A stretch of 64,000 bases of DNA from IMGVR_UViG_3300027771_001853:124001-188000; one strand, 5' to 3'; positions 33,863 to 55,627 are shown, numbered from the stretch's first letter. The notes: generated by a model from the sequence alone, not told the origin. Made by a program: numbers and translations.

Positions 33863-36800
33863 TTATATATCTTCAAAGTTAGCACCTGTTGGTGTTATTA
33901 AGAATTCTATGTCTATAAATTCTAATGACCTTGTTGGTTTGATATATATTTTACCTGATAGGGTATTTTGGTCTATCAATGATGGGTCATCCGAAAGTAC
34001 AACTCTAAAGTCCGTTAATCCCCTTTCTCTTCTTATAGAGTCTAAAATTGGGTTAACTAAATCTAGGAATTCGTTTCTTACTTGTTCGTCATTTTGTTCG
34101 AATAGTAATCTAACAGCTACTGCCGATATTAATTTTCTAGCTTGTAGTAACAATCTTCTAACATTAATTCTATCTAAAGCTGATTCTCTAACTTGTAGTG
34201 TTTTATTACCCCAAATTATAGTACCCACATCAGAATAAGTAGCGATTGGATTGATTCTACCTTTGTATAATATGTCTCTCTCGTCTAAAGTCAATTTCTT
34301 TCTAGCTTTAACCGCGTTTACTATACCTCTTGTATAACCTGCCGATGCGAACCATGGGAAGGCTATATTATCTGTTAATGCTATATTCCTCATTACGTCA
34401 TACGTTGGTGGGAGATATAACTGAACATTATTATCATTATCCCTAAGTTGTACCCAAGGATAGTAAGTTGCTGTATAGTTTGAATCTATCCCTGTAGCGT
34501 CTAGATTATCTACAGCTTCTTGTGGTTGTACAATATTAGTTACATTAAACGTATTAGCGTTCATACTATAGTCTGGTGTTGTAGTAACATATAACGAATC
34601 TGCTCTATCAGCTTCTATCATTTCTATAGTTTCTTCAACTAAGTTACTATGGTTAATGTAGTCAATACCTGGTGTAGCGAATACATTTATGTTCACAGCT
34701 TCTGGGTTTTGGAATGTATTGATAGCGTCTAAATAAGCGTAGTAATCTGTATTCGCTGCATCTGTTCCTCTAGTTCTAAATATACCCCAACCTGAAGCGT
34801 TTGGATATTGTGACGTTGAACATGCCCCGTAGTTCCATCCACTTTGTGACAACATGTAAGTGTCTTCATTACTTCTTGTTTTTCTGTATATATCCCATCC
34901 ATCAAACCCACCATATGGTAAGAACGTGAATTTACGTGAGAATAAGTTATAGTATGGATGGTTTGACTGTGTAGGTTCTGTAGCTAAAGAAGCGTTACCA
35001 ACTTCAAACATCGATGTTCCAGTTATACTTGCTGGAGCTGGAGAAGTGAATTTAACAACTGTTGCTCCACTATCCATATGATAACCTTTACAAAGCATCG
35101 ACCAATCATTTAATGTCTGGTTTGTACATAGATTACCGTTAGCTGGCATCGGTTTACCTTTATATTGTAAGAAGTCACTATCTATCCCCATATTATCTGA
35201 GAACCCAAGATATATCCTTCTAAACTTATCACCTGAACTATATGTTGGTGCTGCAAATGGTGGGTCCTGAACTAATTCACCTGGTTGGTCGTAGTGGGTT
35301 TTATATATCGGACAAACACCATCACAACCATTAGCTCTAGTTATGTAACCTTTAAACCCTTCTGGTACCGCGTTCCATCTAGTATCATCATCTTCATGAT
35401 AGTCAGCTACTTGTAACATAATGTACCTACTAAGAAGTTCGTACTCCCCATTAGATGTACCTACTCTTTTAGCCACATAAGAGTTAAGTGTTGGGTTCAT
35501 ACTACAACGTGTGTATTTTTCTAATACTATCGGGTTTGCGTCTGTGTCATAGAAATCACGAACTTGTATATCAAACTCTCTTCTTTCTAGACTTATATTA
35601 ATTATAGATATTTTAACTGTTGTGTTAGCTGCGTCACCATCAGGTATTGTAATAACTCTAAATAGGTCATACACATTTGTACCCCTTAATTCAGAAACAA
35701 CATATGGTGTAGCTGGTGTTTGGAATTCTTCTAAGTAGTACCCCATAGAGTTGGAACCACCTTCTTGTACTGATGGTGAAAACAATGCCTCACATCTTAT
35801 TCCTTTAATCTTACCTTGATTATAACTGTGTGTTAACCAATTTGGGTATATTTCTTCAACAAAAATTGGGACTTCTTTTCTATCTTTATCAAAAGGAGCT
35901 CTACCTAACACTCTTGGTAGGTAATCAGCGTTTCCTTGACCCATAGAAACTTTAAAAGCAAAATTAGTTCCATCATCATTCATAACATCCAAACCAAACG
36001 AAGCGAATGGGTTAGATTGTGATGCGTTATATGTACCACCTGTACAATTATACGTTACACCTGTACTAGAGATACCTGGACTTCCAGCTCCACCACCATA
36101 TTTTGGGTGTGCCCAAGCAGCGTTTGTAGGTACTTCATATACTGGACCACCAGAATCTAGACTACTAAGACCACGAGACCTTAAGGTCGCTACTGTCTTT
36201 CCATCAAAATCTTTAAATGAATGTCCAGAGAATGCACATGTTGAGAACTGTACTGTACCTGAGAATATACCTGTTGAACCAGACCAACTACCATCAGTCA
36301 TTCCGGAAACAGACATATTAAACCCTATACCGTCGTAATTACTATCCGAATTATAATTAAATAACCCGTATAACCATGGTTCGGATGCTGTTGAACACCA
36401 ATCGTCACAGTTAGTACTAAGAGCGTTCTGAGCAGTAACACCACTATAGTAAGGACTCATACCACCACCTTGGAATACTTCTTCTAAACTATCACCTGAT
36501 GATGTACAACCAAAAGTGTAAGAGGCTGTAGCAGCACTAACGAATTTATCGTATTGGGGTGTACCCGGTAAATTAATTGGTTGGTTTGGATAATTTGCTG
36601 GGTCACCAGATACTGAAGGGTCGAAACCTCCTGGGTGACTAGCTTCACTACATAACTCATCAAAGAAAGCAGTTATTTCTTTTCTTAATGATGTTGCTCC
36701 CCCATCAGCTAATGGTATGTTATTATCTATACTTCTAGCGATTAGATTCGTAGAATAGTCTCCAGCTGTTGAAGACCCACCACTAAACATCCATAACCAT

Positions 36801-37270
36801 TCATTTATACCAGTATAAATTTTACCGTCACTTAATCCTACCACTGTACATGGTGAACCTGAAAGTACAAATGAAACCGAACTAGCTGAACATGTTAGAC
36901 CAGTTACTGAATTACAATCTACAGCCCCTTGTGTACATAATTGCCACGCTGGACCTGCATCATAACCAGTGTAACCCAATACCCTAGTTACGAATAACTG
37001 GTTGGATTGGGTTAGATAACTCTTTGCTATGTAAGGTAACTCATACTTTGGGAATGTTGTGTCCACATACTTTTCAGCACTTGTAGCACCAAAATAAGAT
37101 GAGAACTCACTCCAATTAGTTATAAAAATAGGTTCAAAAGCTGGACCTCTTAAAGTCTCACCTGCTAAACCTAATGTTGTTACACCAACACTCTGTGCTA
37201 CGAATGTTAAGTCTTTTTCCGAGGTATACACACCTGGAGATACGAATACTCTATTACTGTTACTTGCCAT
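33863..37270 (-). CDS. Contractile tail sheath protein (gp18-like) with large insertions
   Basis: VSPGVYTSEKD, GPAFEP, SNYTATYYPW, PWFASAGYTRG, RINPI, WGNKTLQ...SALDRINVRRLL and IKPTRSLEFI. Confidence 0.95.
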   Translation of the reverse strand: MASNSNRVFVSPGVYTSEKDLTFVAQSVGVTTLGLAGETLRGPAFEPIFITNWSEFSSYFGATSAEKYVDTTFPKYELPYIAKSYLTQSNQLFVTRVLGYTGYDAGPAWQLCTQGAVDCNSVTGLTCSASSVSFVLSGSPCTVVGLSDGKIYTGINEWLWMFSGGSSTAGDYSTNLIARSIDNNIPLADGGATSLRKEITAFFDELCSEASHPGGFDPSVSGDPANYPNQPINLPGTPQYDKFVSAATASYTFGCTSSGDSLEEVFQGGGMSPYYSGVTAQNALSTNCDDWCSTASEPWLYGLFNYNSDSNYDGIGFNMSVSGMTDGSWSGSTGIFSGTVQFSTCAFSGHSFKDFDGKTVATLRSRGLSSLDSGGPVYEVPTNAAWAHPKYGGGAGSPGISSTGVTYNCTGGTYNASQSNPFASFGLDVMNDDGTNFAFKVSMGQGNADYLPRVLGRAPFDKDRKEVPIFVEEIYPNWLTHSYNQGKIKGIRCEALFSPSVQEGGSNSMGYYLEEFQTPATPYVVSELRGTNVYDLFRVITIPDGDAANTTVKISIINISLERREFDIQVRDFYDTDANPIVLEKYTRCSMNPTLNSYVAKRVGTSNGEYELLSRYIMLQVADYHEDDDTRWNAVPEGFKGYITRANGCDGVCPIYKTHYDQPGELVQDPPFAAPTYSSGDKFRRIYLGFSDNMGIDSDFLQYKGKPMPANGNLCTNQTLNDWSMLCKGYHMDSGATVVKFTSPAPASITGTSMFEVGNASLATEPTQSNHPYYNLFSRKFTFLPYGGFDGWDIYRKTRSNEDTYMLSQSGWNYGACSTSQYPNASGWGIFRTRGTDAANTDYYAYLDAINTFQNPEAVNINVFATPGIDYINHSNLVEETIEMIEADRADSLYVTTTPDYSMNANTFNVTNIVQPQEAVDNLDATGIDSNYTATYYPWVQLRDNDNNVQLYLPPTYDVMRNIALTDNIAFPWFASAGYTRGIVNAVKARKKLTLDERDILYKGRINPIATYSDVGTIIWGNKTLQVRESALDRINVRRLLLQARKLISAVAVRLLFEQNDEQVRNEFLDLVNPILDSIRRERGLTDFRVVLSDDPSLIDQNTLSGKIYIKPTRSLEFIDIEFLITPTGANFEDI

Positions 37271-37404
37271 TTAATTTGTTTTTTGTCTAAAAATTTAATT
37301 CTACTTTAGATAAATATTGAACAAAATTCAAAAAAACCGTCTTAAAGTAGGATAATATCTAATAAGTGGGAATTAAATAATACTTTTTTCATACTTATTA
37401 AAAA

Positions 37405-37572
37405 ATGTTAGATTTGAAGACGATAAGAACAAAAAATATTAAAATAAAACCTAGGGTTCACAAGCTCCTAAAAGAGTATTGTGATAAACACGGTCTAAAG
37501 ATGTTTGCTTTTGTAGAAAAACTCATATCTGAAAAATGTGAACAAAAAAAAGATGTATACGGAGATTATTAG
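37405..37572 (+). CDS. Small ribbon-helix-helix-like DNA-binding protein (not in the ORF track)
   Basis: 55 aa, MLDLKTIRTKNIKIKPRVHKLLKEYCDKHGLKMFAFVEKLISEKCEQKKDVYGDY. Alternating beta strand followed by two helices. Confidence 0.65.
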   Translation: MLDLKTIRTKNIKIKPRVHKLLKEYCDKHGLKMFAFVEKLISEKCEQKKDVYGDY

Positions 37573-38663: not shown

Positions 38664-38664
38664 A

Positions 38665-39183
38665 TTATATTCCTTTAAATTCGTTTTCTGATACTGGGGT
38701 ACAAATAATACTTCTAAAAAAAGCTTTATACCCACCCATAGTATGTGCATTATCATTTTGTATTCTACCATCATCCGCCACCACAAAATATCTCACCCTA
38801 TCTTCTTTTTCTGGATAACCCACATAATCACCATAACTAATATTGATGGACAATTCTTTTAAATGTTTATCATAAACAGAGAATGTTAAATTTCCGGATT
38901 CTTTATACTCCACTAAACCATCCGCGTATGAAGTGTTTTTAGGTGTATCAATCTTTAGGGACCCCACATTAAACTCTACAGGTGGAAAAAACCTTATTTC
39001 CTCTGGTCCTGATTCAGCATACACAGCATCAACATCACTCTTTTTTCTATCAACCCTAAACAACACTAAAGTAAAATTTAAATCACCATCAACATATTCT
39101 TTACCCATATCGATATTAATATCAAAATCTTCTTTAGAAAAAAACTTGTTTAATCTTTTAATTGGTATTTTCTTTTGTTCCAT
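38665..39183 (-). CDS. Neck / head-closure protein (gp14-like), tentative
   Basis: VLFRVD...VYAES...FFPPVEF and ISYGDYVGY. Context next to gp13- and gp15-like genes. Confidence 0.55.
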   Translation of the reverse strand: MEQKKIPIKRLNKFFSKEDFDINIDMGKEYVDGDLNFTLVLFRVDRKKSDVDAVYAESGPEEIRFFPPVEFNVGSLKIDTPKNTSYADGLVEYKESGNLTFSVYDKHLKELSINISYGDYVGYPEKEDRVRYFVVADDGRIQNDNAHTMGGYKAFFRSIICTPVSENEFKGI

Positions 39184-39244
39184 AATTAAATTTATCTATA
39201 TTATAAATAGTTTGTTTTTTAGTCTTGATTAGTTATACTTGGAT

Positions 39245-40999: not shown

Positions 41000-41000
41000 A

Positions 41001-41007: not shown

Positions 41008-41022
41008 TAGTAAACAACTAAT

Positions 41023-42141
41023 ATGGCTAATATCGATAGTACAGCAAGAAATAGATTATATACCCAAGCAAAGCATTTATTAGGTGCTCCTATAAGGGGT
41101 ATTGAATTGGAGGAGGAGATGATGGACACTCTACTAGATTTATCTATTTTAGATTATGGGATGTATGTACAGGATTGGTTGATAGAAAATCAATGGGCTG
41201 GGGTAGCTGGTATTAATGTTAGTGAAGTAGATTTAGCTTCGGCATTCCTAACCAGAAGTTTAGATTTTGAAACCTCATTTACTTACGCGTATTCTAAGAT
41301 AGCTGGTTTACAGGCTGGGGGACCGTGGGAATTAAAAAAAGATTTTGTTATGTTATCTCCAGGACAACAAATTTACCAAATACCAAAATGTAGAGAAGTG
41401 AATGAAGTTTTATGGTTTGCTAGGGCCGAACTTGATAGTATGATGATTGACCCGTTTCTTGGTGGGTTTGGTGGAATGGGTGGTATTGGTCAAGGTGGTG
41501 GAATGGGTGGAGCCCAGATGGGTGTTATGGGGTCTTATTATATGATGCCAGCTTTCGATATCCTATTAAGGATGGGTGACCGTAACCTTAAAAATCGTTT
41601 AATCGGTGGTGACTTAACTTATAGAATAACAGCAGGACCTGAAGGTACTAAATTTTTACATCTATATTCCACTCCAGGTGGTAGATTTGATTTCGGTAAT
41701 ATGGAAAGAAACCAATCTAAGGTTTGGTATTGGTATTATGAAACTTGTACTGATAGAGATAACTGTTTAAGTGACAATCCTGATGTGGTGAGATTACCTT
41801 CTGATGTACCTATTGATGACATACAATGGAATGAGTTAAATGCTCCAGCTAGAGCATGGGTAAGACGTTACTTCTTTGCGATGTGTAAAGAAACACTTGG
41901 TAGGGTTAGGGGTAAGTACCAGGGTGCTTTAAAGGTACCTGACGCTGATTTAACCATGGATTGGGACACATTACTTACTGAAGCTAAGGATGAGAAATCA
42001 AAATTAATTGAGGAGCTTATGGCAAGATTAGAAAGATTACGTAATGACAAGATGTTGGAACGTAAGGCTTCAGAAGCTGAAAATTTAAATAAATCTCTCG
42101 GGTACAGACCTATGAATCCGGGAAGTATATACGTGATATAA
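41023..42141 (+). CDS. Neck / head-tail adaptor protein (gp13-like)
   Basis: LLGAPIRGIEL...WVRRYFFAMCKETLGRVRGKY...L.MDWDTLLTEAKDEK, typical of gp13-like adaptors. Confidence 0.75.
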   Translation: MANIDSTARNRLYTQAKHLLGAPIRGIELEEEMMDTLLDLSILDYGMYVQDWLIENQWAGVAGINVSEVDLASAFLTRSLDFETSFTYAYSKIAGLQAGGPWELKKDFVMLSPGQQIYQIPKCREVNEVLWFARAELDSMMIDPFLGGFGGMGGIGQGGGMGGAQMGVMGSYYMMPAFDILLRMGDRNLKNRLIGGDLTYRITAGPEGTKFLHLYSTPGGRFDFGNMERNQSKVWYWYYETCTDRDNCLSDNPDVVRLPSDVPIDDIQWNELNAPARAWVRRYFFAMCKETLGRVRGKYQGALKVPDADLTMDWDTLLTEAKDEKSKLIEELMARLERLRNDKMLERKASEAENLNKSLGYRPMNPGSIYVI

Positions 42142-43010
42142 TGGCATTCAGAACAAAAGCAGATTTTTCAAGACAAATATACCAAAGATGTGGTACAACC
42201 GCTATCATGTCAGGGTCCACCTATATGGGTGATAATTTAAGTGTGGGTTATTTTAGTGGTGAAACTTATAATTTTAGTGTAACCGAAACAACAAGTGGAT
42301 TAACTGAGGTAGCTGGTATCCATACAGGTGTAACCACAGTACTCGCTGTTAATATGGCCCCGGTACTAAGTGGTAGGTCTTCAATACAAATAAACCCAAC
42401 ATCGGTAAGGACTGGTACAGCTCAAGACGATATGACACTAGAAAGTAATGGTGATGTTAGAATTACTGTGTCTTCTAGAAGGTTTAAAACTAACATAGAA
42501 CCACACACTTTTTCTAATTTAGATAATTTATTATTATTAGAACCTAAGCTTTTCAATTACAAACAAACAGGTGAGGAGGACTTTGGGTATATTGCGGAAG
42601 AGGTGGAGGACCTAGGTCTTAAAGATTTTGTAAGTTATGAATTAGATGGGGTAACACCTAGAAACGTAAAATACAAATATCTAGCTATAGGACTTATAGA
42701 GTTACTAAAAAAAGATGTTATTAATTTTAACCAAAATAAGGTTACTAAAGTTATTAGTGGGGAACATACTTCTGAAGGTGAAGACTATATTATAACCAAA
42801 GGAAGTGGTGCCACAATATTGTTAGATGATAAGAAAAATGGTAGGATTTACATAAAATCCATGACCACTACCATGGTAAAACCTTTAAGTGGTTTAATCG
42901 ACGAAAAATGGTCGGAGATTGAATTAGGTGAGGAGAGTAGTGTAGAACTGGTTCACCATGAAAATAACTGGTATATTTTATCTTCTGACGGAATTAAGGA
43001 GTCTAATTAG
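42141..43010 (+). CDS. Fibre-like protein with intramolecular chaperone (peptidase S74-like) domain
   Basis: VSSRRFKTNI...LEPKLFNYK...FGYIAEEVE...VKYKYLAIGLIE. Confidence 0.75.
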   Translation: MAFRTKADFSRQIYQRCGTTAIMSGSTYMGDNLSVGYFSGETYNFSVTETTSGLTEVAGIHTGVTTVLAVNMAPVLSGRSSIQINPTSVRTGTAQDDMTLESNGDVRITVSSRRFKTNIEPHTFSNLDNLLLLEPKLFNYKQTGEEDFGYIAEEVEDLGLKDFVSYELDGVTPRNVKYKYLAIGLIELLKKDVINFNQNKVTKVISGEHTSEGEDYIITKGSGATILLDDKKNGRIYIKSMTTTMVKPLSGLIDEKWSEIELGEESSVELVHHENNWYILSSDGIKESN

Positions 43011-46154: not shown

Positions 46155-47687
46155 TTAGAATGAGCTTAAGGCTGTTCTTTTCCAACCAGCCTGTGTTTTA
46201 ACATATATATAATCTTCGGTCCAACTTATACTTCCTATTGGTGACGTAGGATGGTCATTAGTATACGTTACATTCACAGGATAGGTAATACAAAATAAAG
46301 GTGTTGATGGGTATCCATCTGTTGTTATCTTTACCATACCATTAGGTTGAGTAGGGCTCGGACTGTTAACGGTCATTACAATTACCCCAGCATTCATGCT
46401 AAGAGAGCTTGTTGGATTCCAGGGCGAAGTCTTTCCAATCTGTATATTATCTGCTTTAATCGCAAACTGACTAATATTACTTGTTGGTGGAAGTAACGGA
46501 TAACCTCCCCCTATAGAAATATACCCTCCATTTGTACAAGGTAAAATATCTTGTGTTGATAATTGACATGTTTGTGTAGTTGCTGTCATACCAGTTGACG
46601 ATACCCAAGTAGTCATTCCCGTATTACCACTATAATCACAACAACAATTTTGTGTAAATTGATACGAGGTAGCCCCTGAACAATTAGCACCGAATGCTGC
46701 TATTTGGTCTGCGTAAGCGTTATAACTACCACCTTCTCCTGAGAAAGTTGTTGAACCCCAACATCCAAATGTAGCTAATGGATTGTAATTTATTGCGACC
46801 GTATCTGTACAACCTGAAATACCAAATGTAGCTCCTGTTGTTGTTCCTGTTGAAGCACTGTATTGACAACAATTGTTATAAGCCCAACTCCATTGGTTAC
46901 CTGGGCCGTAACTATAACCACCACAATCAGCAAGTGCAAATGGATTATAATTAAGAGCTGTATTATCTGTACAACCAGTTACTTGTACTGTATTTCCAGT
47001 CATAGTATATGGTCCTGGGTCAATTGTCATCTCTCGGATGGCTTGTTCTCCTATAGCAAAACCAACTTTACTTACTACCTCCCAAACTTGTGGTGGGTTC
47101 GCTTGTTGGTCTCTCATACCATCATAAATCCCTGGGAAACAATTAGAACAACTAGTTGTGTGTTCACCTGCTCTAACACTTCCCTCTACTCCTGGATTTT
47201 CTGATGACCAGTGAGTTAATAAACACTTATAATAAGTTCCTACCTTCGCACCATAATTCCATTTGTTGGTTGAGACATCTTCAGCGTAAACAATATCACC
47301 TACAACATATCTGGTAGCTGAAGCCCATGTAACACCTGAATACAACTTCTGACCTTTGAATTGTTTTTCGTATGTCATCCCACTCCACGTTAATGTCATA
47401 CTAATCCCAGAAGTCATTCCAGAATTTGTAGCTCCAGTCATTTTTATATAACCACCTTTAATTTGTGTTACTTTTTTATCAGAATTATCTGTTAAGTCTT
47501 CTATCTTAACACCATCACTATTGTTAGCCATTGTCATGGTTCTAACATTTGTACCATCAGATGTTCTAAAATAGAGTTGGTCTAACCCATTATCGTTACC
47601 ATTACCCACAAACATTGTAAGTTGGCTGGCCTGACTCGGTGTTGTAATTCCGCTAAACGCTTCTTTTGTAAATTTAATTGCTCCCAT
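46155..47687 (-). CDS. Fibre / decoration-like protein with GCTD..A.NYNP.A repeats
   Basis: Two GCTDxxAxNYNPxA repeats, a carbohydrate-binding-like WASATRYVVGDIV...YYKCLLTH segment and C-terminal GSISWTEDYIYVKTQAGWKRTAL. Confidence 0.55.
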   Translation of the reverse strand: MGAIKFTKEAFSGITTPSQASQLTMFVGNGNDNGLDQLYFRTSDGTNVRTMTMANNSDGVKIEDLTDNSDKKVTQIKGGYIKMTGATNSGMTSGISMTLTWSGMTYEKQFKGQKLYSGVTWASATRYVVGDIVYAEDVSTNKWNYGAKVGTYYKCLLTHWSSENPGVEGSVRAGEHTTSCSNCFPGIYDGMRDQQANPPQVWEVVSKVGFAIGEQAIREMTIDPGPYTMTGNTVQVTGCTDNTALNYNPFALADCGGYSYGPGNQWSWAYNNCCQYSASTGTTTGATFGISGCTDTVAINYNPLATFGCWGSTTFSGEGGSYNAYADQIAAFGANCSGATSYQFTQNCCCDYSGNTGMTTWVSSTGMTATTQTCQLSTQDILPCTNGGYISIGGGYPLLPPTSNISQFAIKADNIQIGKTSPWNPTSSLSMNAGVIVMTVNSPSPTQPNGMVKITTDGYPSTPLFCITYPVNVTYTNDHPTSPIGSISWTEDYIYVKTQAGWKRTALSSF

Positions 47688-47726: not shown

Positions 47727-48425
47727 TTACCAAGCTATCTGGTCTAAATATGCTCCCGCACCTAATACTAGTACTCCCGCTCCCACATCAAAAGCTCCAA
47801 CTAGACTTGTATTATGTGTTAGTATGTTATTTTTTGGTATTTCCATAATATCCCCTGATTCCAGAGAATACTTATAATTTCCTTGATTTATAGCTACTTT
47901 ACCAATATCGTGTAACTTATCAATAGCAGCTTCTATATTACCTGTTTGGTACCCTGTCGCTGCTGAAACAGTACCATTGACTGTGACTGTGTACCTATTT
48001 GCCCCGGTTAAAGTATCAACAACAAATGTTGATGCTGATAAACTACTTCTAACTTCAAATCTACCCCTACTAGCGTTTAGATGGTAAAAATTATTAGTAT
48101 TCCCTATGTTAAACTCACCACTTCTATCAATCCCAAATTGTAAATTATGTGTAGTACCAGTAAAATCGTTAGACCATACACTAAAGGCTCTATTATTTCC
48201 ACTATCAACAGATGACCTAATAGTCACAGGAATACCAACACCAGTACTACCAGTTGTGATTGGGTAGGTTTGTGTTTGGGACTCACTTAGATTAGCGTAT
48301 ATTGGTTCTAAAAAATACACTTGACCGGTTTCTGTCCCTCCGGATGTAGGCAAATATAAACCATTCAGACTTTTAAAAGCCTGATTCAAATATTTTACAC
48401 TAACTAAAGAAGAAGTACGTATCAT
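47727..48425 (-). CDS. Putative tail fibre / virion structural protein
   Basis: YLPTSGGTETG fibre-type motif; S/T/G-rich beta sequence. Confidence 0.5.
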   Translation of the reverse strand: MIRTSSLVSVKYLNQAFKSLNGLYLPTSGGTETGQVYFLEPIYANLSESQTQTYPITTGSTGVGIPVTIRSSVDSGNNRAFSVWSNDFTGTTHNLQFGIDRSGEFNIGNTNNFYHLNASRGRFEVRSSLSASTFVVDTLTGANRYTVTVNGTVSAATGYQTGNIEAAIDKLHDIGKVAINQGNYKYSLESGDIMEIPKNNILTHNTSLVGAFDVGAGVLVLGAGAYLDQIAW

Positions 48426-48437: not shown

Positions 48438-49187
48438 TTAACTAGATGTTATTGTCTCCCAAGATGCCGAAGTTTTAATCATTAATTTACCGTTACCGGT
48501 ACCACCATCTGTTGCATAAACAACCATCCCCGCTGTTGGGCCTACTATTGAGTTCATTTGAGCCGTAGTCATTCTAGGTACTGACATTCCTTTTGTTGTA
48601 GACGAAACATCCAGTATACTAGTAACTCCAGGTGATGATGTCCCTATACCGACACTGTCGTTAGCGGCATCAACATAAAACGTATCATTACTGTTTATAG
48701 TTCTAATGACAAAATCTATATCTAAATTATCTTTATTAGCTTCTATCGCTGTTGTTGTAAGAGTTAGGTGTGTTTTATTACCAGCAGAAAAATTAATAGA
48801 ATTAGTGGAAAAAGCTATTTTAGTATCAGTATCACCCAAATGTACGATATCATTTTGGACGTATATCCCTTTACCAAATGTAGCGTATTCAGCGAATCTT
48901 GATGTCGCACTAACCGCTAAATTATCACTAGAACTATTACCTATGGTAACATTCCCATTAAAATCAACATTACCAGCAAATGGTAATCCAGCTGAATTTG
49001 TTATATCATCTTCTATTAACCATTGACCTGCACGTTTTAACGTACCATTATCAAGTTTAAGTGTTATATGGTCATTATAGTCTATTCCTGATACTACGTC
49101 AAACCCTACCATTATAGTAGCGTTGCCACTAGGTGGTGTTGTTATACCACTAGGGTCTTCTTTTTTGATTCTAATAATTGCTGGCAT
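48438..49187 (-). CDS. Putative tail fibre protein
   Basis: HLGDTDTKIAF and VGIGTSSP...ILDVSSTTKGMSVPRMTTAQMNSI..PTAGMVVY, a repeat common in Bacteroidota and phage fibres. Confidence 0.6.
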   Translation of the reverse strand: MPAIIRIKKEDPSGITTPPSGNATIMVGFDVVSGIDYNDHITLKLDNGTLKRAGQWLIEDDITNSAGLPFAGNVDFNGNVTIGNSSSDNLAVSATSRFAEYATFGKGIYVQNDIVHLGDTDTKIAFSTNSINFSAGNKTHLTLTTTAIEANKDNLDIDFVIRTINSNDTFYVDAANDSVGIGTSSPGVTSILDVSSTTKGMSVPRMTTAQMNSIVGPTAGMVVYATDGGTGNGKLMIKTSASWETITSS

Positions 49188-49206
49188 TTTTTCTTATTTT
49201 TATTTT

Positions 49207-49497
49207 TTATACAAAGTCTGTTCCGTAAAGTACTAGTTCACCATCTATACCTAAAGTACCACCTTGATTTATATATTCATCCGCATGAAATGTTTGCATG
49301 TTTTCAAAGATGCAATAGGTGTCCCCAACTTTGAGTGGGGATGGGTGAGCTCCTAGACTTAACATTTTTAGTAAGTCTTTAGTTCCCGCTACAGTGTGAC
49401 ATAACTGAGTTAACGTCACGCTAGAATAGAAAGTAGTTGGTAGGGGTATGTCCCCACCTTGGAAAACTTCTATTATATTTTTACAATTACAACTCAT
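49207..49497 (-). CDS. Small hypothetical protein
   Basis: 96-aa ORF translationally coupled to the 1051-aa gene. Confidence 0.6.
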   Translation of the reverse strand: MSCNCKNIIEVFQGGDIPLPTTFYSSVTLTQLCHTVAGTKDLLKMLSLGAHPSPLKVGDTYCIFENMQTFHADEYINQGGTLGIDGELVLYGTDFV

Positions 49498-52400
49498 TAC
49501 TTATATAGGTTACCTATTAATGTAGCACTCGCTTTTTTATTGGTGTCTACTCTATTAATAATTATTTGCACTATATCGTTTGGCCCAACGCAGAACGGTA
49601 AAGTTTCTACTATAACATCAGTAATTACCGAATTGGGGTATCTCTTGATGGTAAATGCACTTACATTGTCCACTAAAATCGATTTAAATTTAATACCTTC
49701 ATGCTTCGTAACGTCTATATAAGTGTCAAATCCATCAAAATCTAAGACTGTTGTTGGTACTGGAAAGTTTAACATTACGTCAACAGAATCACCTTCAGTA
49801 TAGTATACCGCTCTTCCTTGGTTACACGGTGTTTCACCACACTGACAGTCTATAAGACCATATCTATCTTTTTCTACTAAGAAATTATGTTGTATTTCAT
49901 CCACACCTAAAGGTTTTAAATAATACCTAAACTGTGATATTGCCCCCATAAATGTCCCTGCAAAATTTTCTGTTATACAATCTACCTCGGAATCCACAAT
50001 TATATCACAACCATCACAACCATCAAACCTAAAAGATTCTAATAAACCTTGTGAACCACCACCCCAACTAATATTAAATGGTACCCCAACTTGTAATTGA
50101 TTTGCTGTATTAAGTTGTCTTGGTATCACTTCTTCAAAATTTCTATCCACGAAAACTGGTCTACCATTAACATAAATTGTTAATGTACCCATTCTAAATT
50201 TCTTTTCCTGTACCCATTTTTTTGTAAAATTTAAATAGGTAGGTAGTTCTATATCATTATACCCAAATACCGAATCTACTCCAGGTATCGGTTCGTGTAT
50301 TAAATCATTTACACCACCTTTATTTTCTAAATCACAACAATCCCAACAATAGTCTCTTTCAAATACAGCACTAACGTAAAGCCAAGGTGCTTCTGTTTGT
50401 CCGGTAAAATCACATATAATATCATCACTAAAACGATTTACTACAGTACATGCTGTTATGTAGGTAAAAGCTGTACCACAATTAGGGTTACCAGAACCTA
50501 CTTTATATGGGTGACCACATCTATCGTAATGTATTGTTTCGTCGGTAGTTCCCGTAACAACACAACCACCAGAGAAATATAAAGCCCTATATCCCACCCT
50601 ATAACCTGTTTCACAATCACCACTTAACATTAGAGCAAAATTATTACTACAACAATCAACATAGTAAGGGTACGTTGAAGCTGAAACACAATCTTCATGT
50701 ACGTTCCCACAGTTATCAGTATGGGTACTACATCCCGCAGTTTGTAGTGTTATAGAATCACCGGAACAAGACGGTTCACAAGTTTCTATACAATTTTCTC
50801 CAGAATAGGGTATCCTAAATTTATTCTCAGCTCTTGTACCCATATAAAAGAATATCCCTTTATTTTCTGGGAACAAATCATTTAATGTGTACCCATCACA
50901 TATATTATTACACCTAGGCCTAATAATGGTTTCCACCGTCCATCCACACTCCACTCTTGTTGGTAGTACCTCATATGGGTAACCTTGTAATTTGTAGAAT
51001 CCTTGATAGAACCCACCATTTAATTCATTATAATAACCTTCACAACTACCAGTAGCACTAGTTATACTGTAATTAATATTATAACTACTATAACCAGTAA
51101 CTGGTTTTAATTTTAAACGACAGTCATAATCGTACGGACTATGTGTTAATCCACTTGGTAGTATGGACCATATATTCATTACGTCATTAGCTGTCCTTGC
51201 ACTTTGTGTTACCACATGCACTGTAACGTCAGATTCATAATAACTACAAGTTGTAGTTTCTGTAACTGGTGAAGTTGTTGTGGTTGTAAATGGTGGCCAA
51301 GCGGTTGTTGTCGTTGTTGTTTCCCCTATCCATCCTTGGTCACAATGAGTACAAGAACTAAATACACCAGCAATTATGGTAGCTTGGCTACCTCCCCAAC
51401 CGGTTGTCCCACTAATTACCCTATAACAATCCGTAGAACAGTCAGGCCATCCCGACTCTAAACGATAATAGCTGTCAGCGGATAATGTTATGTCTAAACA
51501 AGATGAACCCGTTAGAACGACTGTAATCGTCCCACCTGTACTTACACATGGTTCTACCTTATACAATAATTTACATGTTGTTGTAGTTGTGGTTGTTGGT
51601 ACTAATGTGGTAGAACTTGTTGTTGTGGTGAGGTGGGGGTTGTATGTCGTGGTTGTAGTTGTTGGACACAAATCCGAACACACCCCACTAGATGTAGGGT
51701 CACAGCACCCACTAAAAGGACCATTAATCACCAACCCTTGGATGTTAGAACCTATAGTTTGCCCACAACCACTAATAATTTGTCTACAGTGTTCTATACC
51801 ATTAGAGTTTGGTGGTGATAAGACCTCGTAATAACTCCCACCTAATAGTGTGGATGCTGATAAAATCTGGTCAAATTGTACGACATTACCGTTCGCTGAA
51901 CAATTTCTCATCGTATAACAATATCCTGTTATCGGAGGTGAGGTTGTTGTGGTTGTTGTTACCGCTGACCATGGCATTGTTGTACATCCAGAACTTAAGG
52001 ACATAAACGTACTAGCTGTACCCCCAGTAAAATCGGTAACAGTTAATTTGACCCTTGATGGTCCTTTGTAAGTTTGTGCGTATGTATTATCAAAAAATCC
52101 GTACACGGTATCCCCTGTACCAACAAATTGGTATGATTGACCACTGTAACCACCCCAAGAATCACTAGAAGTGTATGCGGTACCAAATGTAGCTAGATTA
52201 AAAGTAGTTCCAGTATATGGGTAAGCTTGTTGTTCCCATTCGTAAGTATATGGTCCGGTACCACCACTTGTAACCCCAGATAACGTGTGGGTAAACGCGG
52301 AACCATTAGTATACTCACAGGCCTTTAACCAATGCATGGTACGTATTGCGTGGTCAAATTGGGAGTGTGCTGGTTGACCGAACCTAAGTGTATTCCAATT

Positions 52401-52652
52401 TGCCGCGGAAACATATAGTCCACCATCACCTCCAGTATCACCAGACATTTTTATTGTATCACCAATAAAGTAATATCCTTCATCGAAAAATGGTGGTTGG
52501 TACCCAAATGCGTTACTAGCATTATTGTAAATATAAGTCAGTGAACCCCCTGGTTGTAGTGGGTTTTCTTGGTCTGATGCCCATATAGCCCCCGGATTAC
52601 AGTAATCTGGATTAGCATATAGTGAAACATGTACGTTACCTGTATAGGCCAT
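49497..52652 (-). CDS. Cys-rich structural protein with poly-Thr linkers and a C-terminal LamG/ConA-like region
   Basis: Several T4-T8 runs. C-terminus GWTVETII...GTLTIYVNGRPV...ISWGGG...FMGAISQFRYYLKPL...EIQHNF. Confidence 0.6.
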   Translation of the reverse strand: MAYTGNVHVSLYANPDYCNPGAIWASDQENPLQPGGSLTYIYNNASNAFGYQPPFFDEGYYFIGDTIKMSGDTGGDGGLYVSAANWNTLRFGQPAHSQFDHAIRTMHWLKACEYTNGSAFTHTLSGVTSGGTGPYTYEWEQQAYPYTGTTFNLATFGTAYTSSDSWGGYSGQSYQFVGTGDTVYGFFDNTYAQTYKGPSRVKLTVTDFTGGTASTFMSLSSGCTTMPWSAVTTTTTTSPPITGYCYTMRNCSANGNVVQFDQILSASTLLGGSYYEVLSPPNSNGIEHCRQIISGCGQTIGSNIQGLVINGPFSGCCDPTSSGVCSDLCPTTTTTTYNPHLTTTTSSTTLVPTTTTTTTCKLLYKVEPCVSTGGTITVVLTGSSCLDITLSADSYYRLESGWPDCSTDCYRVISGTTGWGGSQATIIAGVFSSCTHCDQGWIGETTTTTTAWPPFTTTTTSPVTETTTCSYYESDVTVHVVTQSARTANDVMNIWSILPSGLTHSPYDYDCRLKLKPVTGYSSYNINYSITSATGSCEGYYNELNGGFYQGFYKLQGYPYEVLPTRVECGWTVETIIRPRCNNICDGYTLNDLFPENKGIFFYMGTRAENKFRIPYSGENCIETCEPSCSGDSITLQTAGCSTHTDNCGNVHEDCVSASTYPYYVDCCSNNFALMLSGDCETGYRVGYRALYFSGGCVVTGTTDETIHYDRCGHPYKVGSGNPNCGTAFTYITACTVVNRFSDDIICDFTGQTEAPWLYVSAVFERDYCWDCCDLENKGGVNDLIHEPIPGVDSVFGYNDIELPTYLNFTKKWVQEKKFRMGTLTIYVNGRPVFVDRNFEEVIPRQLNTANQLQVGVPFNISWGGGSQGLLESFRFDGCDGCDIIVDSEVDCITENFAGTFMGAISQFRYYLKPLGVDEIQHNFLVEKDRYGLIDCQCGETPCNQGRAVYYTEGDSVDVMLNFPVPTTVLDFDGFDTYIDVTKHEGIKFKSILVDNVSAFTIKRYPNSVITDVIVETLPFCVGPNDIVQIIINRVDTNKKASATLIGNLYK

Positions 52653-52681
52653 AAAGTAATTATTTATTTATATATAAATAA

Positions 52682-53653
52682 TCAGTAAGGTCGTTTCGAC
52701 TCAACGAATCGCTTTATTTCTTCTACATATTTTATTGCACCGAAATCTGGTGAGTAATTTTGGAACTTTTCTGGGTTATTTTTGTACTCTGTGAATGGAC
52801 ATTTATTAATAAATTCACCCTTATAAAACTTTTCTCCTTTCATCTCATCTAGTATTCCAGCTAAATGAAATATGTTTTTTTCTTCATATCTAGAAACTGG
52901 GTCAGTGGCCCAACTAAAAGCCAATTCAGGGTGTAAAGCTGTTTCTTTTTCAAAATACCACATATTCCATAATATGGACCACATTTCCGCAGTCCAGAAT
53001 TGTATGTGAGCGGGAATTGGGTGTTTGTCCCCAAACTTCTTAGTAGCGTCATATATCCTATTACAATCAATATCTACCTTATGCCAAAAATGATAATCAG
53101 TATCCTTTATAAGATATTGTGCTCCCCCAGATTTACTATTATTTTGTTTTATTACATCCACTGATACACCAACCTTATCTGCCATATCTTCCAATAATTC
53201 GATATCACCTAGTTGTGGGTGCTGTGATTTATACCTATCACAACAACCTTTTATGTAATTATAATCTATGTAACCAGGACATTCAGAAACATAACTTATA
53301 TCATCAAGTAACATTGACCCAAAATCCGGTAGTTTCCTAAATAAAATATCTGAATCAGTTAAGAATATACACTTACCATCTTGTGGGTATTCCTTTAAAT
53401 AGTGTTTTACTAAGTGTGGTTTAATACTTGGGATGTACGACCTATTTGTTCTAGTATCTTTATAAAAATGAATATTATCAGGGTAGTCTCTTAGTAACTT
53501 TTTTAACCCTTCACTTGGTTCTTGAGCTCCATTCATTAAACCAAATATAGCTCTACATTTTTTAATAATCCCAAATTTCTCAAAATTAAAGAATAACATT
53601 CTTATTTGCCAATGAAAGTATGGTACGTCTGGTTGTGCACAGATAAAAATCAT
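52682..53653 (-). CDS. GT-A fold glycosyltransferase resembling peptidyl O-glycosyltransferases (SERGT1/HPAT-like)
   Basis: PYFHWQ, YIPSIKPHLVKHYL, DxD motif FLTDSDILF, GGAQYLI, WTAEMWS and IFHLAG. Confidence 0.7.
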   Translation of the reverse strand: MIFICAQPDVPYFHWQIRMLFFNFEKFGIIKKCRAIFGLMNGAQEPSEGLKKLLRDYPDNIHFYKDTRTNRSYIPSIKPHLVKHYLKEYPQDGKCIFLTDSDILFRKLPDFGSMLLDDISYVSECPGYIDYNYIKGCCDRYKSQHPQLGDIELLEDMADKVGVSVDVIKQNNSKSGGAQYLIKDTDYHFWHKVDIDCNRIYDATKKFGDKHPIPAHIQFWTAEMWSILWNMWYFEKETALHPELAFSWATDPVSRYEEKNIFHLAGILDEMKGEKFYKGEFINKCPFTEYKNNPEKFQNYSPDFGAIKYVEEIKRFVESKRPY

Positions 53654-53704
53654 ATATATTTTTTATATAAAATTAAATTGTTTTTACCTATAGTAAATGG
53701 ATTA

Positions 53705-55627
53705 TCAAATAGAAGAATTACATGACGCACAATCCGTGTAAGAAGCGTCTATAGTGTGTTGTATAGGTCTGGTAGTACTTCCTGCATTATAGTAACACTT
53801 GTCATTAACTTTTATATAATTAGATGAGGTAGGAGCTACCACTAAAGAACCATCCCATGAAGAAATGTTTAATTTAGATTCTACCTCATCTATACGATTG
53901 GCAATACCAATAAACCCATTAGGCCAAATACTATTTATATCTCCAGATGAAGCTCCACAACACATATACCTTGGGTAATTACCAGCAAAATTAATTCCGA
54001 CTATTTTTAATGCTCCACCTACACAACATAAAATCGCTGCACCGGAATCACCTCCGACACCAGGAGATGGGTCACCATCACCAGCTGATTTGAATAATAT
54101 TTGTTGGTCGTACATAAAATTAGGGTTACCTAATTTTATATTAGCAGCATTAACTGTTATTATTACTACGTCAGGATAACTCACACTTAAGATGTTACCA
54201 CTACTTCTACCTACTTTATAAACATAACTCCCCACCAACCCATTTACTTCTGCTGTTGTAGCGTGTTGGTATGGTCCCCAAGCTAGACCTAATATAGTTG
54301 TTGTTGGCTCTTCTGTTAATTCTATAAGTGCAGCGTCTACTTTATTTTGTGTGTAGTTATAACATAGTGGGTGGAATCTTTTCACTGAACCCATCTGTAC
54401 TCCCGCACTTGAATTTCCATTATCAGGATAACTAGGTTGTTGTGTTACGTACCCTGTTGACCAATTTGCTCCTTGTAACCCACCATTAGCAGTTGCACCA
54501 GCGGCAGAACCACAATCTATACCAGGATAATTAATTGGGTCCGCGTTTAGCCCAGCTGAAGCAAAATTATAACCTATAACATGATTATTAGTCACACCAA
54601 CTATTTTATCATCGGTATTATCGTAGGCTAACCACCCTAAAGTACCACTACCCGAACCACCCATAGATGGTGGGACTAAGGTTGTACCAATACTAACACC
54701 ACCAGGAATAGCTCTTTGGTTACTACTAGGTGTATAATAAGCGACACCATGGTCTGAACACGCAGGAACACTAATAGATGTTATATTACCACTGCAATAA
54801 CCTAGATTACCTGGACCATAATTAGGACTACATTGTGTACTTTCAGCTAGTATTAAAGCTTTATCATACACACATGTAGAATGTAATACTATCTCACTTG
54901 AAGTTGATATATCTGTTGGGATACCTCCTAGTTCTGACGGCAATAATTCACTATTACTTAATTCACTTAGGTTTTTCTTTTCTATTACATTTAAAGTAAT
55001 ACAATAAATTTCAGTATCCACATTATTTGTAATTTTTCGTCCCACGTACATAGATGTTAGACCTGTGGAAGTGAATGTACCAGAATATTTGTTTACCACA
55101 TAATCATGATAGGATTGGTGTTCAATTCCGTTAGAGTCGGTATAACCAGAATATATAGGGTCACTAGATATTGTGGCTCCTTTAACTCTGACTGTTGGTT
55201 GGACGTTTATAGTCATTTGTATTCTACCACCACCCCCTACGATTGATGGTGTTATAATATTTCCAGGTGTACACCCACTTTGACCATCACATGGTCTAAA
55301 TAATGTAGAAGTTGTTGGTGGTGAGTATGTTGTTGTCGTTGTGGTACCTGGTTGTGTTGTAGTTGTCGTAGTAGCTGGAGCTGCGGTTGTGGTCGTAGTA
55401 GTAGTAAAACAAGTATCGATTATCAAATCAGAACAGCTTGTACATCCAGAAGCATCTATTATTTGTAATCCGTATGTACCACAACATGCTGTAAAATACA
55501 CACAATCGTAATTTGTTGTAGCTACATTATTACACCCAGTTTCACATCCTTGGTTACAAAGACTTACACTATAAGGTGATACCCCACCACCCATACTAAT
55601 TGTTATACCTGTTAAATTACATGCCAT
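53705..55627 (-). CDS. Cys-rich / poly-Thr protein with trypsin-like (S1) serine protease domain
   Basis: GTLG...VTNNHV (His), VDAALI (Asp), KVGRSSG, GGDSGA (Ser) and VGINFAG. Confidence 0.8.
   Translation of the reverse strand: MACNLTGITISMGGGVSPYSVSLCNQGCETGCNNVATTNYDCVYFTACCGTYGLQIIDASGCTSCSDLIIDTCFTTTTTTTAAPATTTTTTQPGTTTTTTYSPPTTSTLFRPCDGQSGCTPGNIITPSIVGGGGRIQMTINVQPTVRVKGATISSDPIYSGYTDSNGIEHQSYHDYVVNKYSGTFTSTGLTSMYVGRKITNNVDTEIYCITLNVIEKKNLSELSNSELLPSELGGIPTDISTSSEIVLHSTCVYDKALILAESTQCSPNYGPGNLGYCSGNITSISVPACSDHGVAYYTPSSNQRAIPGGVSIGTTLVPPSMGGSGSGTLGWLAYDNTDDKIVGVTNNHVIGYNFASAGLNADPINYPGIDCGSAAGATANGGLQGANWSTGYVTQQPSYPDNGNSSAGVQMGSVKRFHPLCYNYTQNKVDAALIELTEEPTTTILGLAWGPYQHATTAEVNGLVGSYVYKVGRSSGNILSVSYPDVVIITVNAANIKLGNPNFMYDQQILFKSAGDGDPSPGVGGDSGAAILCCVGGALKIVGINFAGNYPRYMCCGASSGDINSIWPNGFIGIANRIDEVESKLNISSWDGSLVVAPTSSNYIKVNDKCYYNAGSTTRPIQHTIDASYTDCASCNSSI

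Follow-up and report, generated by a model that had tools for sequence, protein, structure and literature searches.

The window analyzed here is a stretch of 64,000 nucleotides (IMGVR_UViG_3300027771_001853:124001-188000) from the 298-kb genome of an uncultured aquatic phage. Positions 33,863 to 55,627 carry a series of genes, several of which contain many copies of a four-residue motif consisting of Ser/Thr, Gly/Ala, any residue and Thr. The features of this region are as follows.

33863..37270 (-): tail sheath gene (1135 aa), with a core made up of residues 1-99 and 792-1135 and an outer insertion of roughly 690 residues between them.
34898..36973 (-): sheath outer insertion (residues 100-791), carrying all 13 motif copies of the sheath.
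42141..43010 (+): 289-aa fibre protein with a Peptidase_S74 intramolecular-chaperone domain at residues 111-160 (Pfam PF13884, E 5e-9).
46155..47687 (-): 510-aa Cys-rich protein of unknown family, tail-fibre-like by weak feature matches only, with 18 motif copies and two GCTD..NYNP repeats.
47727..48425 (-): 232-aa protein of unknown family with 5 motif copies.
48438..49187 (-): 249-aa protein whose orthologue is marked PTL_trimer (PF26696).
49497..52652 (-): 1051-aa protein with 27 motif copies, most of them in a unique N-terminal half with poly-Thr linkers.
53705..55627 (-): 640-aa protein rich in S, T and G, with only a weak PHROG protease-like hit.

The sheath assignment rests on PHROG (E 1e-52) and Pfam hits on residues 818-1132 and on the alignment of residues 792-1134 to T4 gp18 residues 302-653 (E 3e-31), identifying C-terminal sheath domains homologous to gp18. 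The 510-aa protein has no Pfam or PHROG hit, its weak feature matches being to Mtd_N, PTL_trimer and T4_gp9_10_N, and five homologues at 69-83% identity keep all sites in the first ~400 residues. It shares an N-terminal SGITTP stretch with the 249-aa protein (E 0.015). The C-terminal half of the 1051-aa protein (from about residue 480) belongs to a large family of uncultured-phage proteins with a possible ConA/LamG-like domain, although LamG is only a lead. The 1051-aa protein has 611 relatives among 1.8 billion representatives searched and none in GenBank phages.

An earlier note, made from the sequence alone, had reported a recurrent [S/T]-[G/A]-x-[S/T] tetrapeptide across structural proteins of this range, and this observation is confirmed. 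Every tetrapeptide listed there is present. Sheath residues 123-410 hold TGLT, SASS, SGGS, SAAT, SGDS, SGVT, SGMT, SGST, SGHS, TGVT and TGGT with two more copies at residues 734 and 750. In the S74 protein, five copies lie at residues 24-80, upstream of the chaperone domain and spaced 10-15 residues apart in the stalk, and one lies at residue 222. The note had proposed counts against composition-preserving shuffles as the test of the motif, with a lack of enrichment counting against it, and we compared each protein with 5000 whole-protein shuffles. Observed versus expected counts were 13 vs 5.2 for the sheath (p 0.002), 6 vs 1.2 for the S74 protein (p 0.0008), 18 vs 4.6 for the 510-aa protein (p<0.0002), 5 vs 1.7 for the 232-aa protein (p 0.018; 5 vs 0.8 for the core motif defined below, p 0.0004) and 27 vs 6.1 for the 1051-aa protein (p<0.0002). 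Within the sheath, the outer insertion has 13 vs 4.0 with none in residues 1-99 and none in residues 792-1135. The excess survives shuffling inside 10-, 20- or 40-residue windows and dipeptide-preserving shuffles. In an unbiased scan of all gapped tripeptides in the genome, SGxT and SAxT rank directly behind poly-Thr runs. As the note had claimed, the motif is sparse in replication proteins, with the polymerase, SNF2 helicase, DnaB-like helicase, 5'-3' exonuclease, UvsX-like protein, gp32 SSB and RNR all at or below expectation, and the motif-bearing proteins are otherwise unrelated at BLAST level.

Three corrections to the earlier description are needed. First, the 640-aa protein that closes the range (5 vs 5.4) and the 249-aa protein (2 vs 2.1) are not enriched. 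Second, the motif is narrower than originally written. Position 4 must be Thr (SGxT 118 vs 19, SAxT 71 vs 10, TGxT 75 vs 24) while SAxS, TGxS and TAxS are at expectation, and a hydrophobic residue precedes the motif, giving a core of hydrophobic-[S/T]-[G/A]-x-T. Third, the motif is not confined to this range. Genome-wide the count is 478 vs 274, concentrated in 21 large proteins, while the other 247 proteins of the genome stand at 0.9x.

The motif is found across the clade and follows the same grammar in two unrelated protein families. In 149 non-redundant homologues of the 1051-aa protein it is 7-fold enriched (1484 vs 212), with SGxT at 9.6x, TGxT at 6.4x and SAxT at 7.0x but NGxT at 1.0, DGxT at 0.8, SSxT at 1.2, SGxS at 2.2, SGxV at 1.3 and SGxI at 0.8. 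In 119 sheath homologues it is 3.7-fold enriched in the outer part (1259 vs 339) and almost absent from the C-terminal core (3 vs 72), with SGxT at 4.2x, SAxT at 5.5x, NGxT at 0.9 and DGxT at 0.8 in the outer parts. Permuted patterns of the same composition sit at baseline, indicating that order and spacing are specific. In contrast, no enrichment is seen in T4 structural and fibre genes (37 vs 35) or in the Microcystis phage Mel-JY01 (18 vs 13.5), although a cultured Flavobacterium phage shows a mild excess in two fibre proteins.

Sites are conserved between close relatives but turn over between distant ones. At about 85% identity, 52 of 55 sites are kept, and all 5 sites of the 232-aa protein are kept in its 92%-identical orthologue. 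Identity at the three defined positions is 0.91, 0.96 and 0.98, compared with 0.79 and 0.86 for other S/T and G/A and 0.82 at x. At about 45-55% identity only 13 of 42 sites are kept, yet density stays high in both lineages. Similarly, 60 aligned sheaths average 11 sites spread over 124 different motif columns, all within residues 118-750. Codon usage at the sites equals background, so selection acts on the protein. The sites lie in variable, indel-rich stretches, their flanks being more variable (0.29 vs 0.43, p 2e-7) and more indel-prone than those of other Ser/Thr, and all sheath sites fall in the insertion that replaces the outer domains of T4 gp18. The motif is thus over-represented on parts that are likely exposed and almost absent from the buried sheath core, while the other proteins of the genome show no excess. 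Exposure is inferred here from gp18 homology and not computed from a model, the only predicted structure, that of the 510-aa protein, having a pLDDT of 30. Non-motif homologues carry Asp/Asn-Gly, turn-like residues at the same columns.

The genome also encodes a 17-kb cluster of soluble sugar-nucleotide and glycosyltransferase genes inside the late-gene block (genome 216.7-233.7 kb), co-oriented with and lying between motif-rich structural genes and the gp23-like capsid gene. The arrangement is the same in one relative. The cluster holds two GDP-mannose dehydratases, epimerase/reductases, DegT aminotransferases, a methyltransferase, sulfotransferases and at least 7 glycosyltransferases. None has membrane segments, no flippase-, polymerase- or priming-type protein is present, and there is no ThyA-type hydroxymethylase that would allow sugar-modified DNA. 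One GT2_5-type transferase is a single-copy gene in 17 of 19 large related contigs, the other two contigs ending beside the family gene, and is absent from the two outgroup phages tested. In loci chosen by this enzyme, neighbouring large ORFs are motif-rich. At least 8 soluble glycosyltransferase genes are present, but their acceptor is unknown and none could be tied to protein substrates by homology to known protein glycosyltransferases, so their presence leaves undecided whether a cognate transferase is among them.

The interpretation offered by the earlier note, a short linear signal selected on surface loops of virion proteins and plausibly the acceptor site of a phage glycosyltransferase or other modifier, is partly supported. 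A short linear signal under selection, as opposed to a domain repeat, is supported by the data above. All-against-all BLAST finds almost no shared segments, the pair-distance histogram is flat in this genome's proteins, the only SprB hit is below threshold in a single protein, and T9SS relatives of the GCTD repeat are not enriched. Location on outer, variable parts is supported indirectly, while the acceptor-site role is plausible but untested.

The motif is a short linear signal that selection keeps at high density on the variable, outward-facing parts of virion proteins, namely the sheath outer domains, fibre stalks and large Cys-rich fibre or baseplate proteins, across a widespread clade of uncultured aquatic jumbo myophages. 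We tentatively favor, at less than even confidence, a model in which it is a recognition and acceptor site (sequon) for the phage's own cytoplasmic O-glycosylation machinery. In this model, the clade-conserved soluble GT2_5-type transferase would start a glycan on a hydroxyl of the motif, the small residue after the first hydroxyl would let the peptide enter a narrow active-site cleft, and the Thr three residues on would be a recognition element. Lineage-specific transferases, sulfotransferases and a methyltransferase would then extend the glycan using 6-deoxyhexose and amino sugars made by the cluster, resulting in a variable sugar coat on the tail. Our analysis demonstrates the motif, its grammar, the selection on it, its distribution and the presence and conservation of the enzymes; that these enzymes act on these proteins, that the motif is their site, which hydroxyl is used and which enzyme starts the chain are inferences. 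That turn-forming Asn/Asp and beta-branched Val/Ile cannot replace the hydroxyl residues argues against a purely conformational role, and enrichment in mutually unrelated virion proteins indicates independence from fold.

Several findings weigh against this model. No mass, lectin or structural evidence of any modification exists, and covalent glycans were not assayed here. The residue preceding the motif is hydrophobic in about 55% of sites, which fits a strand end as well as an enzyme preference, the spacing in the S74 stalk resembles corners of a fibrous beta structure, and at semi-conserved columns the Gly often persists when Ser/Thr is lost, which suggests a turn. Glycosyltransferases are common in aquatic phages and Mel-JY01 has two GT2 genes without any motif excess. 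The link between the GT2_5 enzyme and the motif is confounded by shared ancestry, as no clade member was found that has one without the other. Poly-Thr and Thr-Pro linkers, which are also over-represented, are more conventional O-glycan sites, and some S/T/G-rich giant proteins with poly-Thr linkers show no excess, namely the 1977-aa protein (2 vs 11) and the 640-aa protein. The motif also matches no known sequon, with N-x-S/T, the Bacteroidota D-S/T-[AILMVT], chlorovirus NTxT and proteoglycan SGxG patterns at 0.80, 0.81, 0.67 and 0.81 in the 21 motif-rich proteins.

The main rival, which we consider less likely, is a lineage-specific structural loop or turn motif by which the beta-rich outer domains and fibre stalks of this clade close a strand and start the next one. 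Here, the hydroxyls would cap the backbone, the small residue would allow tight packing, no trans-acting enzyme would be involved and the glycan cluster would serve something else. The hydrophobic residue at -1, a weak hydrophobic preference after the Thr, the retention of Gly with Asp/Asn at the same columns in non-motif homologues, the S74 stalk spacing and the mild excess in the Flavobacterium phage are consistent with this reading. In addition, some copies belong to known structural repeats, an SprB-like SGGTxPYxY stretch and the xSGCTD..NYNP repeat. However, Asn/Asp at position 1 and Val/Ile at position 4, the usual turn and strand residues, are not enriched at all, and Ala is as enriched as Gly at position 2, which a positive-phi turn would not allow. 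There is also no beta-type alternation of hydrophobic residues upstream of the motif, positions turn over while density is held, and the same grammar appears in unrelated folds but not in the phage's other 247 proteins or in T4 or Mel-JY01 fibres and sheaths.

A linear motif with another function is improbable but possible. It could be the site of a different modification such as phosphorylation or direct sulfation, a docking site for an assembly factor, or a hydroxyl-rich surface binding water, ice or polysaccharide, like the near look-alike ice-binding motif of the Flavobacterium frigoris ice-binding protein. The grammar, surface bias and turnover apply equally to this reading, Lys, Arg, Asp and Glu are depleted around the sites giving uncharged hydroxyl-rich patches, and the cluster contains sulfotransferases. 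However, the sulfotransferase hits are to carbohydrate-type families, no ice-binding domain was found in any motif-rich protein, the spacing is irregular with no array one coil apart, and no kinase or other candidate modifier was looked for or found. Finally, a by-product of composition, low complexity, hidden domain repeats or a DNA-level signal is rejected, despite the S/T/G richness, poly-Thr runs and a few copies in repeated GCTD..NYNP units, by the shuffling controls, the permuted patterns, the 640-aa and 1977-aa proteins of similar composition without excess, the near lack of shared domains, the absence of periodicity and the background codon usage.

Native glycosylation of phage particles has been documented only in a few mycobacteriophages and no sequence rule for it is known. 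The broader proposal that this clade, with 500 or more contigs in IMG/VR, runs its own cytoplasmic O-glycosylation system, in which the GT2_5-type enzyme reads the sequon and lineage-variable transferases extend the glycan into an evolving sugar coat on the tail sheath and fibres, is held slightly more tentatively still, but would represent the first sequon known for phage virion glycosylation. If so, glycosylated virion proteins could be predicted from sequence across hundreds of environmental phage genomes, one conserved enzyme would be singled out for biochemical study, the large, variable sugar-gene clusters of aquatic jumbo phages would have an explanation, and a new cytoplasmic glycosylation tag might become available as a tool. 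Tail surfaces, and not only capsids, would appear to be shaped by selection for a sugar coat, which bears on host recognition, stickiness to marine polymers and evasion of defences. Even if structural, the motif is a strikingly specific, lineage-restricted piece of protein grammar that current domain libraries miss.

Virion glycosylation of mycobacteriophages (Freeman et al. 2023, as summarised in PMC12619734) similarly involves a tailed phage with glycosyltransferase genes in or beside its structural gene block, and the outcome proposed here is likewise glycans on Ser/Thr of virion proteins. In mycobacteriophages, the glycans sit on C-terminal extensions of the capsid and tail-tube subunits and were shown by mass spectrometry. 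In the present phage no glycan has been shown, the capsid protein is barely enriched (4 vs 2.1), C-terminal extensions were not examined, the candidate sites are an internal four-residue motif on the sheath outer domains and fibres, and the enzyme set is much larger and includes sugar-nucleotide synthesis. Chlorovirus PBCV-1 also encodes its own soluble glycosylation machinery, including GDP-mannose 4,6-dehydratase-type enzymes, and uses short, atypical virus-specific sequons (NTGT, NTET, NTAT and NIPG; PMC9614988), resembling the present motif in a pattern that ends in Thr. It is, however, a eukaryotic virus with N-linkage to Asn at a handful of fixed sites on one capsid protein.

Human peptide O-xylosyltransferase XT1 requires its acceptor Ser to be followed by Gly or Ala, the same two-residue rule, explained in XT1 by a constriction in the peptide cleft (PMC5992326), and the phage cluster also holds sulfotransferases and a weak beta4GalT7-like hit. 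XT1 is an animal Golgi enzyme of family GT14 that prefers acidic flanks and has no Thr at +3, and no XT1 homologue was identified. The T-A/G-X-T/N ice-binding motif of Flavobacterium frigoris FfIBP (PMC5334608) is an almost identical pattern from the phylum of the probable host. In FfIBP the motif recurs once per coil on one face of a DUF3494 beta-helix, while no such domain was found here, with no Pfam hit to it at E<=0.01 in any of 19 motif-rich or neighbouring proteins, and no regular spacing. Lastly, the shifting N-glycan sequons on surface glycoproteins of animal viruses show the same maintenance of site density with turnover of positions and the same concentration in variable exposed regions, but those viruses use the host's ER machinery and the universal N-x-S/T sequon.

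The genome is that of a distant T4-like myophage. The window covers bases 124001-188000 of a 297.6-kb IMG/VR virus record that is estimated to be 93% complete and has a G+C content of about 35%. Residues 792-1134 of the tail sheath align to residues 302-653 of T4 gp18, and the phage encodes a gp23-like capsid protein together with gp13- and gp32-like proteins, a family B polymerase, a DnaB-like helicase, a 5'-3' exonuclease, a UvsX/RecA-like protein and a ribonucleotide reductase. No cultured phage in GenBank matches its DNA or its 1051-aa protein. Features discussed below are located as follows.

Window 14805-21422, - strand: 2205-aa protein with an amidase/endolysin-like domain at residues ~1921-2045
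Window 46155-47687, - strand: 510-aa protein, with a repeated Cys-containing unit at residues ~236-250 and ~290-305
Window 48438-49187, - strand: 249-aa protein
Window 49497-52652, - strand: 1051-aa protein with poly-Thr linkers
Window 57607-63540, - strand: 1977-aa Cys-rich protein with many poly-Thr linkers
Window 63576-64000 onward (genome 187576-201114), - strand: open frame of about 4512 aa starting at the right edge of the window
Genome 201132-201974 (locus L006, 13132-13974), - strand, outside the window: 280-aa Cys-rich protein
Genome 216693-233729 (G000:C1, loci L015 and L016), outside the window: sugar-nucleotide and glycosyltransferase cluster
Relative G004:C1, 27616-32736 (locus L105), - strand: 1706-aa protein of a 326-kb relative

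The [S/T]-[G/A]-x-[S/T] motif is over-represented in five structural-region proteins but not in replication proteins. Every tetrapeptide listed in the earlier note is present. The comparison proposed there as a test, counting the motif in structural and replication proteins against composition-preserving shuffles, was carried out with 5000 shuffles per protein. The sheath contains 13 copies against 5.2 expected, all of them within residues 100-791 where 4.0 are expected, the S74 fibre protein (289 aa, + strand) contains 6 against 1.2, the 510-aa protein 18 against 4.6, the 232-aa protein 5 against 1.7 and the 1051-aa protein 27 against 6.1. In contrast, the 249-aa protein (2 against 2.1) and the 640-aa protein that closes the range given in the note (5 against 5.4) are not enriched. 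All replication and nucleotide-metabolism proteins of the window are at or below expectation. The observation made in the note is therefore real, although two of the proteins in its range do not share in it.

The excess is not an effect of composition. It survives shuffling within 20- and 40-residue windows as well as dipeptide-preserving shuffles. In a scan of all contiguous and gapped tripeptides over the 268 ORFs of the genome, SGxT (140 against 42) and SAxT (87 against 24) rank directly behind poly-Thr runs. Genome-wide, the motif as written in the note occurs 478 times against 274 expected, with the surplus located in 21 mostly large proteins, several of them outside the window. The highest density in the genome is found in the 280-aa Cys-rich protein (14 copies against 2.6), which would make a convenient test substrate, while the open frame of about 4512 aa is mildly enriched (45 against 27) and shares a repeated segment with the 1977-aa protein. 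The latter is depleted of the motif (2 against about 11 expected) despite a Thr content of 13%, with part of the expected value coming from its Thr runs, and has no family hit. The 2205-aa protein, probably a virion-borne cell-wall hydrolase inside a giant protein, is not enriched. BLAST finds almost no similarity among the motif-rich proteins, distances between copies show no periodicity, which rules out a regular solenoid, and codon usage at the sites equals that of other Ser, Gly and Thr codons, which rules out a DNA-level cause. The signal is therefore at the protein level and is not a hidden repeat.

Other over-represented elements accompany the motif. Poly-Thr linkers (runs of 5-7 Thr, often with Pro) separate Cys-rich modules in the 1051-aa and 1977-aa proteins and occur genome-wide, with TTT found 331 times against 60 expected, whereas relatives use Thr-Pro linkers instead (TPT 571 against 63). 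A repeated unit of the form x-S/T-G-C-T/M-D-x-x-A-x-N-Y-N-P, present in the 510-aa protein and elsewhere in the genome, accounts for the second group of over-represented tripeptides (GCxD 45 against 7, GCT, CxDP). The same unit gives weak hits to Bacteroidota T9SS-sorted surface proteins, which hints at a Bacteroidota host, but the T9SS proteins that share this GCTD..NYNP repeat are not enriched in the motif. The 510-aa and 249-aa proteins share an N-terminal stretch of roughly 50 residues with SGITTP at the same place (E 0.015 for the single comparison), potentially representing a common attachment module. Pfam and PHROG searches with 19 large proteins returned almost nothing, LamG being only a sub-threshold lead.

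The true motif is narrower than that given in the note. Position 4 must be Thr, with SGxT enriched about 6-fold, SAxT about 7-fold and TGxT about 3-fold while SAxS, TGxS and TAxS are at expectation. Position 2 is Gly or Ala only, position 1 is Ser or Thr with no substitution by Asn or Asp, and position 3 is free. The preceding residue is hydrophobic in about 55% of sites compared with a background of about 35%, and Lys, Arg, Asp, Glu and Pro are depleted nearby.

The motif is a clade-wide feature. The C-terminal half of the 1051-aa protein belongs to a large family of uncultured-phage proteins with 611 hits among 1.8 billion representatives and at least 562 contigs in IMG/VR. A profile search of this family against PDB sequences returned no hit. 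In 149 family members, none more than 50% identical to another, the core motif occurs 1484 times against 212 expected, with a z-score above 3 in 130 of them, and the excess is still 5.5- to 6.6-fold against 10-, 20- and 40-residue window shuffles. Permuted patterns of the same residues (T-x-[GA]-[ST], [GA][ST]xT, [ST]x[GA]T) count 200-251, which is baseline, and SGxT is the single most over-represented gapped tripeptide in the family, ahead of the family's own signature motifs. A second, unrelated family gives the same result. In 119 sheath homologues the motif occurs 1262 times against 408 expected, with 1259 against 339 in the N-terminal part plus insertion and 3 against 72 in the C-terminal 340-residue core. 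The grammar is the same (SGxT 4.2-fold, SAxT 5.5-fold, NGxT 0.9-fold, DGxT 0.8-fold, SSxT 0.9-fold) and a hydrophobic residue precedes 56% of sites against a 33% background. Outside the clade, no excess is found in T4 structural and fibre genes (37 against 35) or in the structural region of Microcystis phage Mel-JY01, whose sheath is the nearest cultured relative (18 against 13.5), while the cultured Flavobacterium phage immuto shows a mild excess (56 against 37) with two proteins above z 3.

Individual sites are conserved between close relatives and turn over between distant ones. Compared with a syntenic relative at about 85% protein identity (locus L018), 52 of 55 sites are kept in place and the three defined positions are 91%, 96% and 98% identical, whereas other Ser/Thr are 79% and other Gly/Ala 86% identical and the free position, at 82%, is no better than average. 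G004, the complete 326-kb relative, shares 114 proteins at 25-66% identity. The same orthologues are enriched in both genomes (the sheath has 8 against 2.3 here and 8 against 2.7 there; correlation of z-scores 0.57), but only 13 of 42 sites stay in the same column and the defined positions are no better conserved than other Ser/Thr/Gly/Ala. G004 also encodes a 1706-aa protein made largely of Gly-Thr-Ser triplet repeats that do not match the motif (10 against 58 expected). Across 60 aligned sheaths there are on average 11 sites per protein (range 1-22) using 124 different columns, all within residues 118-750, and only three columns are used by three quarters of the sequences. The ten residues on either side of a site are less conserved (0.29 against 0.43 identity, p 2e-7) and more often gapped than those around other Ser/Thr in the same proteins. 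An AlphaFold model of the 510-aa protein built from 6 sequences had a pLDDT of 30 and is unusable, so that the mapping of sites onto predicted structures proposed in the earlier note gave no measure of exposure. Where a family column usually holds the motif, the exceptions mostly hold Asp-Gly, Asn-Gly or x-Gly, that is, loop or turn residues. Overall, these data show purifying selection on existing sites, turnover of positions, maintained density and confinement to variable outer regions.

The genome encodes a 17-kb co-oriented cluster of soluble glycan-synthesis enzymes. The cluster (216.7-233.7 kb) is flanked on one side by further motif-rich structural genes and on the other by the gp23-like capsid gene at 236.8-238.6 kb. 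It contains two GDP-mannose 4,6-dehydratases, two epimerase/reductases, DegT-type aminotransferases, a methyltransferase, sulfotransferases, an asparagine-synthase-like amidotransferase and at least seven glycosyltransferases, namely two GT2, a GT2_5, a GT11, a GT7C/GT2_2 type, a TOD1/MUCI70-like protein and a weak NodZ/FUT8-like protein. An eighth GT2 gene lies at about 22 kb. None of the cluster proteins has a membrane segment, no flippase-, polymerase- or priming-type polytopic protein is present, and the genome has no ThyA-type hydroxymethylase of the kind needed for sugar-modified DNA. A soluble acceptor, most simply protein, is therefore the likeliest.

One transferase is conserved across the clade. 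Of 19 large related contigs, 17 carry two or more GT2 genes, usually 10-20 kb from the gene of the 1051-aa family, and the two contigs without them end right beside that gene. Most transferases of the cluster have no counterpart in G004. The GT2_5-type enzyme (448 aa here, about 545 aa in relatives, where it is fused to a C-terminal half that looks GT4-like in an alignment consensus) has exactly one orthologue in each of the same 17 contigs and none in Mel-JY01 or the Flavobacterium phage, and at least 509 IMG/VR contigs encode a relative of it. In 76 loci chosen by this enzyme, family homologues in the flanks are 6.8-fold enriched, other ORFs of 400 aa or more 2.1-fold and small ORFs 0.8-fold. 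Homology searches for an initiating enzyme gave only weak hits to beta4GalT7, a Rhodobacter GT of unknown role and PglI, nothing specific in NCBIfam and no hit to the O-FucT family, for which the control genomes were also silent; a complex of the transferase with a substrate fragment was not modelled. The association test with outgroups is weak, as Mel-JY01 has GT2 genes but no motif excess, immuto has GT2 genes and a mild excess, and T4 has neither. No genome was found with the motif but without the enzymes, or the reverse within the clade, and the link is confounded by shared ancestry. A conserved enzyme alongside a conserved motif grammar, with variable extending enzymes, makes GT2_5 the best candidate for the initiating transferase.

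The earlier note interpreted the motif as a short linear signal selected on surface loops of virion proteins and plausibly the acceptor site of a phage glycosyltransferase or other modifier, a view that our data support in part. The motif, its grammar, the selection acting on it and the presence and conservation of the enzymes are directly established by the sequence analysis, whereas a protein acceptor and initiation by GT2_5 are inferred, and no chemical evidence of modification exists. The grammar argues against a purely conformational motif. A turn would accept Asn or Asp at position 1 and would not accept Ala for a positive-phi Gly, and a strand start would accept Val or Ile for Thr, but none of these substitutes is enriched. 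Considering the grammar together with the precedents described below, we tentatively rank a glycosylation sequon first. Poly-Thr and Thr-Pro linkers, possible O-glycan sites in their own right, are alternative or additional glycan sites. Known sequons were tested and rejected, and literature searches returned nothing relevant on the motif and no sequon for phage virion glycosylation.

The main rival, which appears less likely, is a lineage-specific loop motif. It is supported by the hydrophobic residue before the motif, the persistence of Gly at some columns, the 10-15-residue spacing in the S74 stalk and the few copies that belong to SprB-like or GCTD..NYNP repeats. A different ligand-binding or modification role is unlikely. 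This includes the ice-binding look-alike T-A/G-X-T/N of FfIBP (PMC5334608), of which the defining domain and the regular spacing are lacking here. A composition artefact is excluded.

The sequon reading has precedents in other systems. Glycosylated phage virions are known from mycobacteriophages (summarised in PMC12619734). The same paper describes aquatic jumbo phages of Bacteroidota with four core glycosyltransferase families, a lineage to which membership of the present phage was not examined. The rule that a hydroxyl residue is followed only by Gly or Ala is exactly the one imposed by the active-site constriction of human xylosyltransferase 1 (PMC5992326), and a virus-specific four-residue sequon ending in Thr has a precedent in chlorovirus capsid glycosylation (PMC9614988).
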